From contig NW_027266275.1 of the NCBI RefSeq assembly GCF_022045235.1, positions 29,202,001-29,266,000 of the forward strand: a stretch of 64,000 nt of DNA. Reading direction: 5' to 3'. Source of the stretch: Haliotis cracherodii (Eukaryota). The position numbers and the translations under genes were made by a program. Below, in pieces: positions 18,645 to 28,615 of this stretch; within the stretch, counting starts at the first letter, position 1; each line of letters starts with the position of its first letter. The notes under the pieces are model-generated. The model was not told the DNA's origin. It did not search any database and saw only the letters and a list, made by a program, of their open reading frames with translations.

Positions 18645-20129
18645 TTAATGAAAAGTAGTTGAAAATCGTTTGAAATAGACGTGTTTTAAAGCAACTTTTG
18701 CTGTGATTCTTGTCAAAGGATTTAAATCTAGACACTTCTTAATAAGCAACATTAGCTTTCTGTCCGGACTATGAACACCAGATACGTCAGGCTCACTGCG
18801 GTCTGGTCCTATAAAGTGTGGCGTCTTCCCCGTCAGAGTTTCATATACAGACGCTCCAAACCTCCATACATCAAATGACTTGATAATATCATCTTGAACA
18901 TCCCCTGCCTCGTTCTGTGGATACATGCTGTTCTTGCCAAGCCTGGTCGCATCGCCAAAGTTTATAATTTTGACCTTTCCACTCTGTTCAATGAGAATAT
19001 GGGATGGTGTTATGTCCTGATGGGCTACGTTATTTTGATGGAGATATTGAAGAACGTCCAGGACTTGTTTCATGATTTTCTTGATCGAACTTTGTCTCCG
19101 AGCCACACACCTCCTGTCCATGAATTCCGCCAAATTGCACCCGCCGACATACTCGAGTATCAAGACCTGGCGCCCATTGTGTTCAAAGAGGTCGTAGGCC
19201 TTGATGATGTTTTTGTGTTGGACCTGACTGAGTATGCTGTATTCATTGGTCCATACTTTTGAAGCTTCGCCCGGCTCGGTGTTTCTTGGGTGTGACACTT
19301 TCGCTGCAAACACCTTACCATCCTTGAACACACTGTACACAGTGGCTGAACCACCTGAGCTCATGACTCCCCTGAAGAAGTAGCCACGGATTGTAAGGCC
19401 GATGAACGGGTCGTGTGGGAGTGAGCGGAGAACCCCATTCCTTGATTGAAGCTCTAACCGCCAGTCTTCAAGGTGACTCTGGTGACAAGGGATAGACGGG
19501 ACATCTACGGGAGATGGACTGGACACAGACTCCAGATGTCGCCCCATGAACAAATACTGTCGCCACAGCTCTGCTGCCGCGTTGTGGACATCGTCAGCTC
19601 GACGAGGATCTAAAGACAGAAATATTGTCATATTACCATTGTGTACAAAGTACATGGATTATTACATAAAGGTATATAGCAACTACGAAGATGCATGGAA
19701 ACATAAGTATAAAATGTAAAAGGGAAAACAAAGTAGGAAAAAATTAGGAAAAGTATCAAATAAAGCGATTATAGTGTTAAAATATAACAATAGAATTATG
19801 CCGGCTGGCTTAAGACGTTCGGAGATCACGGCCAATAGGTAAGATTACAAAACCAACAAACTACACGTAGTCTTTATATTTGTATTTCGTCCAAAAAGCC
19901 TGATCTAATTTGTTTGTTAACAGGGTCGAATGTGAGATCGCAAAAAGGGAGTGTGTGTCACACATTTAATCATTAATTTAAGACTGACATGCACGACTAA
20001 GTTAGTTAAACCAAGTATAAGCCTTCTTTAAAAGGTCCCCGCCCAGATAATTCACTAAACATTTAAACCACGTCAGCATAAGTACATTGAGACAGGCAAG
20101 ACAAAATGGGGTTACTTACCGAACTCCAT
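18645..20129 (-). CDS. CAMK-like Ser/Thr kinase-fold protein, predicted pseudokinase, copy 1 (exons 20120-20129 and 18645-19609; 324 aa)
   Basis: Subdomains FAAK, NEYSIL, HKNII, LILEY, HQDITPSHIL, NFG, DVWRFG, PLTRIT; ATG GAG TTC G|GTAAGT donor and TTTCTGTCTTTAG|AT acceptor give MEFDPRR; AATAAA on - strand at 18581-18586. Confidence 0.88.
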
Positions 20130-20254
20130 GTTCAGCAAGGTAATGGAAACCGATGTCCAAAGCAACACTTGAACTTATATTTTGGATCAAATCTCTCCAA
20201 ATACAGCCGTGAAGAGAAAACACGTGTCGTCTCTGTAAAGTGCAAGACTTTATG

Positions 20255-20310
20255 TGACGTTTCCTTTCTGTGACGTCACACGTTTATGACGTCATGTGTC
20301 TGTGATGTCA
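20255..20310. promoter_or_regulatory. Cluster of four CRE-type sites upstream of kinase copy 1 (repeated at 22986-23041, 25717-25772, 28741-28796)
   Basis: TGACGTTT 20255, TGACGTCA 20271, TGACGTCA 20287, TGATGTCA 20303; E-box CACGTG at 20221. Confidence 0.6.
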
Positions 20311-20550
20311 GAACAGAATAGCTCTACAAACTGGTTGCCGGCTCTCTCTGCGCGTCCTCAACTTGTATACTTTCTTTTGATCGGCATTTTACAATTTATA
20401 AATTGTAGATGACAAAAAAGACAGTTATGATTCTGACCGATGCTTGAATTGGGGTGAGTGAGTGGATTTCAATCTTGAACAGTATAAATATCACGACGTG
20501 TCAGCTGGATGTGGCAGGGCAGGTCTTGTCTTAGACACATGATTGAGTGG

Positions 20551-20930
20551 ATATTACAACAGGACGACAGTGACACAGACGCCAGAACCAGTAGATATTA
20601 CAACAGGACGACAGTAACACAGACGCCAGAACGAGTAGATATTACAACAGGACGACAGTAACACAGACGCCAGAACCAGTAGATATTACAACAGGACGAC
20701 AGTAACACAGACGCCAGAACCAGTAGATATTACAACAGGACGACAGTAACACAGACGCCAGAACCAGTAGATATTACAACAGGACGACAGTAACACTGCC
20801 GCCAGAACCAGTAGATATAAAAACAGGACGACAGTAACACAGACGCCAGAATGAGTAGATATTACAACAGGACGACAGTAACACAGACGCCAGAAGGAGT
20901 AGATATTACAACAGGATGACAGTAACACAG
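20551..20930. repeat. 44-bp VNTR, unit 1 (~8.6 copies)
   Basis: AGTAGATATTACAACAGGACGACAGTAACACAGACGCCAGAACC. Confidence 0.95.
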
Positions 20931-25591: not shown

Positions 25592-26010
25592 GTTCAGCAA
25601 GGAAATGGAAACCGATGTCCAAAGCAACACTTGAACTTATATTTTGGATCAAATCTCTCCAAATACAGCCGTGAAGAGAAAACACGTGTCGTCTCTGTAA
25701 AGCGCAAGACTTTATGTGACGTTTCCTTTCTGTGACGTCACACGTTTATGACGTCATGTGTCTGTGATGTCAGAACAGAATAGCTCTTTAGACTGGTTGC
25801 CGGCTCTCTCTGCGCATCCTCAACTTGTATACTTTCTTTTGATCGGCATTTTACAATTTATAAATTGTAGATGACAAAAATGACAGTTATGATTCTGACC
25901 GATGCTTGAATTGGGGTGAGTGAGTGGATTTCAATCTTGAACAGTATAAATATCACGACGTGTCAGCTGGATGTGGCAGGGCAGGTCTTGTCTTAGACAC
26001 ATGAATGAGT

Positions 26011-26694
26011 GGATATTACAACAGGACGACAGTGACACAGACGCCAGAACCAGTAGATATTACAACAGGACGACAGTAACACAGACGCCAGAACGAGTAG
26101 ATATTACAACAGGACGACAGTAACACAGACGCCAGAACCAGTAGATATTACAACAGGACGACAGTAACAAAGACGCCAGAATGAGTAGATATTAAAATAG
26201 GACAACATTTACATCGGAATGAGTAGATATTACAACAGGACGACAGTAACACAGGCGCCAGAACGAGTAGATATTACAACAGGACGACAGTAACACAGAC
26301 GCCAGAGCCAGTAGATATTACAACAGGACGACAGTAACACAGACGCCAGAACCAGTAGATATTACAACAGGACGACAGTAACACAGACGCCAGAACGAGT
26401 AGATATTACAACAGGACGACAGTAACACAGACGCCAGAACGAGTAGATATTACAACAGGACGACAGTAACACAGACGCCAGAATGAGTAGATATTACAAC
26501 AGGACGACAGTAACACAGACGCCAGAACCAGTAGATATTACAACAGGACGACAGTAACACTGCCGCCAGAACCAGTAGATATTACAACAGGACGACAGTA
26601 ACACAGACGCCAGAATGAGTAGATATTACAACAGGACGACAGTAACACAGACGCCAGAGCGAGTAGATATTACAACAGGACGACAGTAACACAG
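26011..26694. repeat. 44-bp VNTR, unit 3 (~15.6 copies including one 38-bp variant)
   Basis: Same unit; variant ...ATTAAAATAGGACAACATTTACATCGGAAT near 26183-26220. Confidence 0.95.
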
Positions 26695-27138
26695 CCTACG
26701 ACAAGCATAGTCGCCTTTTACGGCAAGCATGGGTTGCTGAAGACCTATTCTACCCCGGATCTTTCATCTTGATATAAGCGCATACCTTCTTGTTATGAAT
26801 GCATACCAATATGTTATTAGCGCATGCCATTTCGTTGATCCTCAGGAGGCAACATCGTGTGACTTAGCTGATAACTCATATTAAGACAGCACGTCGTTAA
26901 GGAAGGATTGGAAAACAAAACACAAAACTGAATATTTTGATTGTATTGATTCATTACATTTGATATGACAGTAAAACAGTAAAAATAACTGTCCATGAGA
27001 CACTACACATTCATGAGAAACATTCCTGGAAAATTCTTGATGAAACAGAAATTTACACACTTTCAGTAAGGGTTTTATTGATTAGACAGACGAGGACTGA
27101 CATTTGTATTGTAACATTATAATTTAAAATTGAGAACT

Positions 27139-28615
27139 TTAATGAAAAGTAGTTGCAAATCGTTTGAAATAGACGTGTTTTAAAGCAACTTTTGCTGTGA
27201 TTCGTGTCAGAGGATTTAATTCTAGACACTTCTTAATAAGCGACATTAGCTTTCTGTCCGGACTATGAACACCAGATACGTCAGGCTCACTGCGGTCTGG
27301 TCCTATAAAGTGTGGCGTCTTCCCCGTCAGAGTTTCATATACAGACGCCCCAAACCTCCATACATCAAATGACTTGATAATATCATCGTGAACATCCCCT
27401 GCCTCGTTGTGTGGATACAAGATGTTCTTGCCAAGCCTGGTCGCATCGCCAAAGTTTATAATTTTGACCTTTCCACTCTGTTCAATGAGAATATGGGATG
27501 GTGTTATGTCCTGATGGGCTACGTTATTTTGATGGAGATATTGAAGAACGTCCAGGACTTGTTTCATGATTTTCTTGATCGAACTTTGTCTCCGAGCCAC
27601 ACACCTCCTGTCCATGAATTCCGCCAAATTGCACCCGCCGACATACTCGAGTATCAAGACCTGGCGCCCATGGTGTTCAAAGAGGTCGTAGACCTTGATG
27701 ATGTTTTTGTGTTGGACCTGACTGAGTATGCTGTATTCATTGGTCCATACTTTTGAAGCTTCGTCCGGCTCGGTGTTTCTTGGGTGTGACACTTTCGCTG
27801 CAAACACCTTACCATCCTTGAACACACTGTACACAGTGGCTGAACCACCTGAGCTCATGACTCCCCTGAAGAAGTAGCCACGGATTGTAAGGCCGATGAA
27901 CGGGTCGTGTGGGAGTGAGCGGAGAACCCCATTCCTTGATTGAAGCTCTAACCGCCAGTCTTCAAGGTGACAAGGGATAGACGGGACATCTACGGGAGAT
28001 GGACCGGACACAGACTCCACCAGTCGCCCCATGAACAAATACTGTCGCCACAGCTCTGCTGCCGCGTTGTGGACATCTTCAGCTCGACGAGGATCTAAAG
28101 ACAGAAATATTGTCATATTACCATTGTGTACAAAGTACATGGATTATTACATAAAGGTATATAGCAACTACGAAGATGCATGGAAACATAAGTGTAAAAT
28201 GTAAAAGGGAAAACAAAGTAGGAAAAATTTAGGAAAAGTATCAAATAAAGCGATTATAGTGTTAAAATATAACAATAGAATTATGCCGGCTGGCTTAAGA
28301 CATCGGAGATCACGGCCAATAGGTAGATTACAAAACCAACAAACTACACGTAGTCTTTATATGTGTATTTCGTCCAAAAAGCCTGATCTAATTTGTTTGT
28401 TAACAGGGTCGAATGTGAGATCGCTAAAAGGGAGTCTGTGTCACACATTTAATCATTAATTTAAGACTGACATGCACGACTAAGTTAGTTAAACCAAGTA
28501 TAAGCCTTCTTTAAAAGGTCCCTGCCCAGATAATTCACTAAACATTTAAACCGCGTCAGCATGATAAGTACATTGAGACTGGCAAGACAAAATGGGGTTA
28601 CTTACCGAACTCCAT
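27139..28615 (-). CDS. Predicted pseudokinase copy 4, most divergent (exons 28606-28615 and 27139-28094; 321 aa)
   Basis: Same motifs; 9-bp in-frame deletion (QSH) between GGTGAC direct repeats; about a dozen amino-acid substitutions relative to copy 1. Confidence 0.88.

Follow-up and report, generated by a model that had tools for sequence, protein, structure and literature searches.

Why should a genome carry four adjacent, intact genes for a protein that has the fold of a kinase and lacks key catalytic residues of one? The question is raised by a stretch of 64,000 nucleotides (nt) from the abalone Haliotis cracherodii (RefSeq assembly GCF_022045235.1, contig NW_027266275.1, forward-strand positions 29,202,001 to 29,266,000; G000:C12:29202001-29266000 in our numbering), hereafter termed the window, to which all coordinates refer. 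An earlier reading of the letters alone (the sequence-only reading) had proposed a recently amplified, lineage-specific pseudokinase array that is kept at high dosage. Our analysis indicates that the locus probably harbors a two-exon pseudokinase gene of a Haliotis-only family, which has been under purifying selection after its degeneration, is spliced in related abalone, has reached four copies recently and is presumed to be non-catalytic.

Scans for direct repeats and with Tandem Repeats Finder (TRF) resolve positions 18204-30502 (contig piece C12, H. cracherodii) into four head-to-tail units of ~2.73 kb each. On the gene strand, here the minus strand, each unit comprises a minisatellite with a 44-nt repeat, a spacer of ~250 nt, a twin cAMP response element (CRE), exon 1, an intron, the coding exon and an AATAAA signal. 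Unit 1, with the 3′ flank, gene copy 1 and the minisatellite, spans 18204-20932 (repeat families D4-D13), unit 2 spans 20933-23663 (direct repeats, junctions), unit 3 with a longer minisatellite 23664-26696 (direct repeats, TRF, junctions) and unit 4 together with the distal minisatellite 26697-30502 (repeats, TRF). The units thus start at 18204, 20933, 23664 and 26697, with start-to-start intervals of 2729-2731, 2731 and 3024-3033 nt, the third being longer because its minisatellite block is longer. The four minus-strand open reading frames (ORFs) at 18645-19655, 21375-22385, 24106-25116 and 27139-28140 are intact and comprise 336, 336, 336 and 333 codons; their products share 96-100% identity, with no difference between those of copies 2 and 3. 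The array is confirmed by the direct repeats, the four intact ORFs and the identity of their products; its synonymous divergence (dS), lower within the array (0.005-0.025) than between species (0.056), marks it as recent.

The structure of the gene was determined by aligning Logan contigs of four sequencing runs to window positions 18000-20560, three of them RNA-type with transcriptome-sized assemblies (X1, X2 and X3, from the three related organisms A, B and C) and one of DNA with a genome-sized assembly (X15). Contigs cover 18441-19609 in X1, X2 and X3 and, in addition, 20064-20235 in X1 and X2, where they join position 19609 to 20120 and thereby skip 510 nt that are bounded by GT and AG on the minus strand. 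Intron and spacer have zero depth in X1-X3 but every bin is covered in X15, which lacks the joint; the runs labeled 'RNA?' therefore behave as RNA, and the predicted splice is real. A retrocopy origin is rejected, since the gene contains an intron and the joint does not occur in the DNA run. Consequently, the long ORF begins with 15 intronic codons, which corrects the sequence-only reading, and the spliced product consists of MEF, encoded in exon 1, followed by ORF residues 16-336, with a length of 324 amino acids (321 in copy 4). The protein analyses below employed exon 2 (window:18648-19607:-); the three codons of exon 1 are described only.

Exon 1 of copy 1 (20120-20235, minus strand, from the depth table and the joint; its 5′-end is approximate owing to 86-nt bins) comprises the 5′ untranslated region (UTR) and ATGGAGTTCG, which codes for Met-Glu-Phe and the first base of an Asp codon and holds the sole ATG of the exon in the context AACATGG. 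The exon has a length of ~116 nt and ends with AACATGGAGTTCG before the donor GTAAGT. The intron (19610-20119 and 510 nt in copy 1, with the joint in X1 and X2; 510-511 nt among the copies) ends with TTTAG. Exon 2 (18645-19609, minus strand, stop included), delimited by the ORF, the Pfam Pkinase match and the joint 19609/20120, encodes part of residue 4 and the rest up to residue 324, that is, an N-terminal helix with the motif HNAAAELW and, after a disordered linker, the degenerate kinase domain. Correspondingly, exon 2, intron and exon-1 coding end, all on the minus strand, lie at 21375-22339, 22340-22850 and 22851-22860 in copy 2, at 24106-25070, 25071-25581 and 25582-25591 in copy 3, and at 27139-28094, 28095-28605 and 28606-28615 in copy 4, whose exon 2 bears a 9-nt in-frame deletion. 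The AATAAA signals (18581-18586, 21310-21315, 24041-24046 and 27074-27079, minus strand) are located ~60 nt past the stop codon, and the RNA-type contigs extend to about 18441-18465 in copy 1. All four copies keep the exon-1 ATG with its GTAAGT donor, the acceptor TTTAG, the AATAAA signal and the twin CRE, and the open frames, splice sites and poly(A) signals noticed at first sight are likewise borne out.

The same splice is implied by the H. rufescens RefSeq models of both paralogue types (the array type and that of the paralogue L006 introduced below), which begin with MEFDP. The H. cracherodii models P0001, P0011 and P0012 begin at an in-frame Met within the intron; these starts are corrected here, as are the automatic names 'CDK2 homolog' and 'aurora kinase C-like'. 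The translated X1 contig matches the H. rufescens protein XP_046325929 at 256 of 257 residues. Its differences from copy 1, like those of the other contigs, are mostly states common to the paralogue L005 and therefore ancestral states that the array has lost. The short contigs with the joint reach an identity of only 89-93% with copy 1 over the start of exon 2, so that they could stem from either paralogue type.

The twin CRE consists of two palindromes, TGACGTCA-N8-TGACGTCA, at 20271-20294 in copy 1, ~40-60 nt upstream of the transcribed region, and at 23002-23025, 25733-25756 and 28757-28780 in copies 2-4 (pattern match). The window contains four matches versus zero expected, and a further ACGTCA half-site adjoins. 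Position and spacing are conserved in the array, L005 and L006 despite flanks that are otherwise diverged or unalignable. This arrangement suggests control by CREB/CREM/ATF-type factors, and expression in the germ line would be a guess on the same basis. In the whole 1.18-Gb genome the pattern occurs 284 times as compared with 6 times for a reversed-pattern control, and some spacers recur, for example TTTGATTG; genome-wide, this looks like either a widespread twin-CRE promoter layout or a repeat family containing the module.

Is the encoded protein a kinase? The Pfam family Pkinase (PF00069) is matched with an E value of 3e-38 and 132 bits over profile positions 9-263 of 263, which assigns the window proteins to the eukaryotic protein kinase superfamily with a predicted bilobal fold. 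Motifs were assigned by HMMER alignments to CDKL3 and PfPK5. In all copies the structural residues are kept, namely K119 in FAAK (the β3 Lys), E138 in NEY (the αC Glu), the Asp of the HRD motif, DVW (subdomain IX) and R316 in PLTRI (the Arg of subdomain XI), as had been read from the sequence; the β3 Lys, the αC Glu and the HRD Asp are residues of the nucleotide pocket. The alignments likewise verify the reported losses. HQDITPSH aligns with HRDIKPEN, so that the catalytic-loop Lys, the γ-phosphate Lys, is replaced by Thr and the Asn by His. NFG occupies the DFG position in all four copies and NFA in L005, and the Asp is also lost in the H. rufescens orthologues. Set against active-looking paralogues, the activation segment is shorter by 13+4 residues (17), including the block STPxYxPPE, so that the P+1 loop and APE are gone. 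The catalytic-loop Asn and the DFG Asp are the two Mg2+ ligands of kinases. We used an operational definition of a pseudokinase, in which at least one of the β3 Lys, the HRD Asp and the DFG Asp is missing; as the DFG Asp is lost, the window proteins fall under it and are predicted pseudokinases, in agreement with the sequence-only reading. One item of that reading does not hold: the glycine loop SSGGSA, counted there as degeneration, is common to the whole family, active-looking members included.

The AlphaFold2 (AF2) model calculated from a 44-sequence alignment has a mean predicted local distance difference test (pLDDT) score of 79 and a predicted template modeling (pTM) score of 0.75, with most of the kinase domain above 85, a helix at residues 7-21 and values below 50 at residues 21-62; it supersedes a run with 13 sequences that gave a poor C-lobe and a pLDDT of 55. 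The best Foldseek matches of the model are CaMKII, DAPK3, DRAK2, STK33 and CASK, with a probability of 1.0 to CaMKII and DAPK3. The family profile reaches 100-114 bits with CDPK, twitchin, MLCK4 and DAPK, and CDK, MAP2K5 and PLK4 score nearly the same. The kinase domain is thus modeled as CAMK-like, whereas the profile leans toward the CAMK group but not decisively. As had been proposed for the N-terminal extension, the N-terminal 68 residues have no match in Pfam or Atlas. An Atlas feature search pointed to SBK1/SBK2-like clusters, which we treat as a lead only. The protein lacks a signal peptide, and we take it to be a cytosolic product of 324 amino acids with a short amphipathic HNAAAELW helix, a disordered linker of ~45 amino acids and the CAMK-like kinase domain.

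Where does this gene come from? Searches of 5.8 billion and 1.84 billion proteins revealed relatives above the level of generic kinases only in Haliotis, namely in H. cracherodii, H. rufescens, H. rubra and H. asinina, with 292-606 bits in the genus and at most 114 bits outside it. The top ranks of the profile search against 1.84 billion proteins were mostly proteins with several kinase domains; the true members were all from Haliotis. The 1.18-Gb, 80-contig assembly of H. cracherodii holds about twelve members, and the exact motif HNAAAELW is encoded at 8 sites versus 0 for the reversed-pattern control. All members share a short first coding exon, the H-N-A-A-A-E-L-W motif, an xSGGxA glycine loop as well as AAKVS and RITAK. 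In alignments of 11-13 sequences the motif reads H/Q-N-A/V-A-A/V-E-L/A-W, with N, A, A, E and W invariant. The family forms a clade with a support of 100/100 against the TSSK-like outgroups L013 and L014.

A TSSK1-like kinase of abalone has been described (PMC6905558, according to the passage of PMC7401350 that cites it), and the window genes resemble TSSK-type kinases in being small, almost intronless kinase-only genes of the CAMK neighborhood. Membership of that group, which would call for HRDLKxEN and DFGF motifs, is ruled out, with 25-28% identity to L013 and L014 of the same genome, which fall outside as outgroup.

Within the family, L007-L011 and the proteins of H. rubra and H. asinina keep HRD(I/L)KPxN and DFGG, and their full activation segment ends in PPE; by sequence they look catalytically competent. 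The Haliotis paralogues of this kind (automatically named 'PLK4-like', 'aurora kinase C-like' and 'MARK1-like', e.g., XP_046359806 and XP_071088087; L007-L011) are 38-49% identical to the window genes, with which they share the two-exon layout, the HNAAAELW-type motif, the xSGGxA loop, FAAKVS in β3 and a C-terminal RITAK..YF. They differ in having HRDIKPxN, DFGG and STPxYxPPE where the window genes have HQDITPSH, NFGD and the deletion of 17 residues. L011 (G000:C2:33032486-33036310) also has a Pro/Ser-rich repeat insert of ~450 amino acids (units such as TPSVHVPAPARGK) between HNVAAE(A/T)W and the kinase domain.

The window genes, L005 and L006 constitute a degenerate clade with a support of 100/100 and a long stem of 0.59 changes per site, which by its placement arose by duplication inside the Haliotis-only family. 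L005, 1.5 Mb away on the same contig, is 93% identical to the window genes and corresponds exactly to RefSeq XP_071105181.1; L006 on contig piece C23 is 63% identical to them and corresponds exactly to XP_071114830.1. All members of the clade have H(Q/G)DITPxH, the 13+4-residue deletion and an Asp after xFG where active-looking paralogues have Gly. L006-type proteins retain DFG, in contrast to NFG or NFA in the array and L005 types; the loss of the DFG Asp therefore came after that of the Lys, the Asn and the activation segment. Outside H. cracherodii, H. rufescens and their close relatives the clade was not encountered; the annotated proteins of H. asinina and H. rubra yielded no member, absence being unproven there as the search needs shared words. 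Intact H. rufescens orthologues are P0009 and P0013. The array-type cluster holds one H. rufescens protein. In contrast, the L006-type cluster at 90% identity contains five distinct H. rufescens RefSeq proteins (P0014-P0018) on 63.3-Mb contigs, one of them a 651-amino-acid model with two kinase domains, as compared with a single L006-type locus in H. cracherodii; copy-number gain may thus be recurrent in the degenerate clade. The lineage specificity claimed before is in line with this distribution. Our literature search found no description of this kinase family or of an abalone pseudokinase family. The family appears to be previously undescribed, while lineage-specific pseudokinases as a class are already known.

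Has the protein been maintained after its degeneration? The ratio of nonsynonymous to synonymous divergence (dN/dS) was calculated by the Nei-Gojobori method with Fisher p values, for orthologues over codons 80-336 of copy 1. The array differs from L005 with a dS of 0.095 and a dN of 0.031 (dN/dS 0.3, p 8e-4) and from L006 with a dS of 0.65 and a dN of 0.235 (dN/dS 0.36, p 1e-10). Between species, computed from the listed contig differences with about one difference per contig unlisted, copy 1 and the orthologous transcript of X1 have a dS of 0.056 and a dN of 0.018 (dN/dS 0.33, p 0.02), and copy 1 and that of X2 a dS of 0.056 and a dN of 0.012 (dN/dS 0.21, p 0.002). Both orthologue ratios, a comparison that the earlier reading had called for, are significantly below one. 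Except for the comparison with L006, every pair diverged after the DFG Asp had been lost, and ratios below one in such pairs indicate that the protein was kept after it had become a pseudokinase by the usual definition; judged from these ratios, purifying selection has acted since that loss. Constraint is highest in the N-lobe (0.09-0.27) and the αF-αI core of the C-lobe (0.12-0.18) and lower from αD to NFG (0.53), in the N-terminal linker (0.6) and in the activation-segment remnant (0.4-0.9). Between the array and L005 the coding sequence (CDS) diverges by 4%, the UTRs by 14-20%, the intron by 26% and the upstream DNA by 32%. The view that the gene is not a decaying pseudogene is upheld by the ratios of 0.2-0.4 after loss of the Asp, the conserved promoter module and the spliced transcripts in relatives.

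Several observations weigh against this picture. The synonymous rate between the array and L005 is well below the intron rate, which suggests some exon gene conversion that would blur the dN/dS of that pair. The transcripts are assembled contigs from orthologues of related abalone and are not demonstrably derived from these four H. cracherodii copies. Among the copies dN/dS is ~1, a value compatible with neutrality; copies 4 and 2 differ by 17 nonsynonymous and 4 synonymous changes, and a ratio of 0.33 is rejected (p ~0.01). The β3 Lys, αC Glu and HRD Asp are invariant and the L006 paralogue clade still has DFG, leaving room for atypical catalysis. Finally, a mechanism as decoy or regulator would be inferred solely from shared architecture, and a complex prediction for the window protein with the active-looking paralogue P0019 gave a score of 0.00, which is no evidence either way.

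How did the copies arise? The internal junctions at 20933, 23664 and 26697 are all identical, each joining the end of the minisatellite (ACACAGCC) to the interior of an abundant dispersed repeat at 18073-18270 (TACGACAAGCA), in which the proximal breakpoint of the duplicated unit (18204) is also located. Because the three junctions are identical, they point to a single founding duplication followed by unequal crossing-over. The minisatellite blocks lie at 20546-20930 (upstream of copy 1), 23277-23661, 26003-26694 and 29031-29696 (TRF) and contain 8.8, 8.8, 15.9 and at least 15.3 repeats, the distal block grading into an older 38/114-nt variant up to 30502. The 44-nt minisatellite is unique to the locus, since all 47 genome-wide matches to its core fall within the array. 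It is absent at the single-copy paralogue loci L005 and L006, which rules it out as an ancestral promoter element. The dispersed repeat is SINE-like and very abundant, with a depth of 10^5-10^7 (summed contig depth, RNA-type runs included) and many loose ends in all four runs; ARAGORN found no tRNA-like part in it. It has a 22-nt internal duplication, and similar copies are found near 13724-14236 and 17567-17776.

In the tree the four gene copies group together (support 99/93), separate from the H. rufescens orthologue, and this together with the lower dS within the array indicates that the amplification is specific to the H. cracherodii lineage and younger than the split from H. rufescens, or that the copies were homogenized there. 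Their identity is mosaic: copies 2 and 4 are identical over 309 nt upstream and show 21 differences in the CDS, a single CDS site separates copies 2 and 3, and copies 1 and 4 share a 3′-UTR. Such a pattern is what conversion or exchange leaves behind. Nine replacements are private to copy 4, three of them in the activation-segment remnant, and this copy also has the in-frame 9-nt deletion. The pattern among the copies fits relaxed constraint on redundant copies or a mixture with positive selection. Thus, the proposal that the array is kept at high dosage is unsupported, as the four-copy state is young and specific to H. cracherodii and the among-copy ratio is ~1.

This raises the strongest alternative, a plausible one that we nevertheless rather doubt: the gene would be functional, but the array would be young and selectively neutral, its copies gained through unequal crossing-over at a locus flanked by a minisatellite; the extra copies would be redundant and unconstrained and would decay or vanish, and dosage would have no adaptive role. 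The among-copy ratio and the changes private to copy 4 fit this scenario, as does the single array-type protein of H. rufescens, and the copies are too young for their intact frames to be informative. It is opposed by the retention of promoter, sole exon-1 ATG, splice sites and frame in all four copies, and by the L006-type sister clade with its five H. rufescens proteins, as repeated gains in separate lineages hint at something beyond drift. Moreover, a ratio near one would equally fit a mixture of positive and purifying selection.

What could a non-catalytic product do? It would act through binding: the HNAAAELW helix, common to the active-looking paralogues, together with the constrained N-lobe and C-lobe core would engage the partners or regulators of those kinases, and the window protein would thereby compete with or modulate them, the copy number setting the strength of the effect. 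We advance this mechanism tentatively and consider it possible; a model of shared partners is the simplest, because the helix is the only non-kinase feature common to all members.

Alternatively, the protein could be an atypical but active kinase, which transfers phosphate without canonical Mg ligands, as in CASK, or binds metal via His219 and Asp235 (NFGD). The Lys, Glu and HRD Asp, invariant in all members of the degenerate clade, could still permit nucleotide binding. In addition, the N-lobe is the most constrained region, the Asp after xFG is found throughout the clade in place of the Gly of active-looking paralogues, and CASK is among the structural neighbors. In CASK, whose CaMK domain is a Mg-independent atypical kinase and part of a MAGUK scaffold, the catalytic-loop Lys is present and the activation segment is complete. 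The likeness to it extends to the CAMK-like fold (Foldseek match 6lnm), the replacement of both Mg ligands and the retention of Lys, Glu and HRD Asp. In contrast to CASK, the window protein has Thr in place of the catalytic-loop Lys, a truncated activation segment and no other domains; with the P+1 loop and APE the canonical site for peptide substrates is missing, and the remnant of the segment evolves near-neutrally. A CASK-like Mg-independent kinase is rejected on the grounds that the catalytic-loop Lys and the complete activation segment with its P+1 loop are absent, and we regard atypical activity of any kind as unlikely.

If the product is a pseudokinase, as we favor, the locus offers a natural system for asking why a kinase fold outlives catalysis and whether dosage matters. 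Most studied pseudokinases are ancient and conserved. Here, the whole trajectory is visible in one genus, from an active-looking family through stepwise catalytic loss and continued selection to a rise in copy number in at least one species; its practical importance is limited for now.

The nearest analogue in genetic architecture is ROP5 of Toxoplasma gondii, a tandem cluster of polymorphic pseudokinases with variable copy number, which acts together with the active kinases ROP18 and ROP17 (PMC3386190, PMC3950507). Both loci comprise tandem intact pseudokinase paralogues with active relatives, a copy number that varies between close lineages and raised amino-acid divergence among the copies. 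The analogy is confined to architecture and the biology is unrelated: the parasite secretes ROP5 as an effector, which carries a signal peptide and the fold extension of the ROPK family, whereas the window protein belongs to a free-living animal, has no signal peptide and adopts a CAMK-like fold. By this analogy, the degenerate clade might represent a young regulatory module with rapid turnover inside a kinase system exclusive to abalone; a conflict still under way, in gametes or innate immunity for instance, would then select for pseudokinase dosage and surface variation. Such a conflict would fit the fourfold NFG type in H. cracherodii, the fivefold DFG type (L006) in H. rufescens and the excess of amino-acid change among new copies; we think it improbable, and if it held, dosage and surface variation would be selected traits, as at the ROP5 locus. 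An assembly artefact in which one gene was falsely expanded is highly improbable: the count of four is that of the assembly, but the copies have private substitutions, a 9-nt deletion, minisatellites of differing lengths and mosaic rather than uniform identity.

The remainder of the window contains further features. A single-exon Toll-like receptor gene encoding 882 amino acids (LRR_8, LRR_4 and TIR) is located at 10035-12683 on the plus strand, 6 kb from the array, and this adjacency alone is no evidence of a connection. An ORF of 430 amino acids resembling a GT10 alpha-1,3-fucosyltransferase (45806-47098, minus strand; Glyco_transf_10, E 9e-49) adjoins one of the two runs of N, which are found at 15749-15880 and 45627-45762. 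An RNase H fragment (PF00075) at 5852-6568 (plus strand) is probably the remnant of a retroelement. The long repetitive open frame at 1339-2761 (plus strand), rich in Pro, Ser and Thr with units such as PTSPPTLPPATQPSLATT, lies in a GC-rich region with a strong negative GC skew and may be a mucin-like exon or a minisatellite. Likewise, tandem-repeat open frames are present at 37557-37964 and 57573-58863 (minus strand), with the units MVYHPTSVTRYITYLSN and GHCNINIKVFL.

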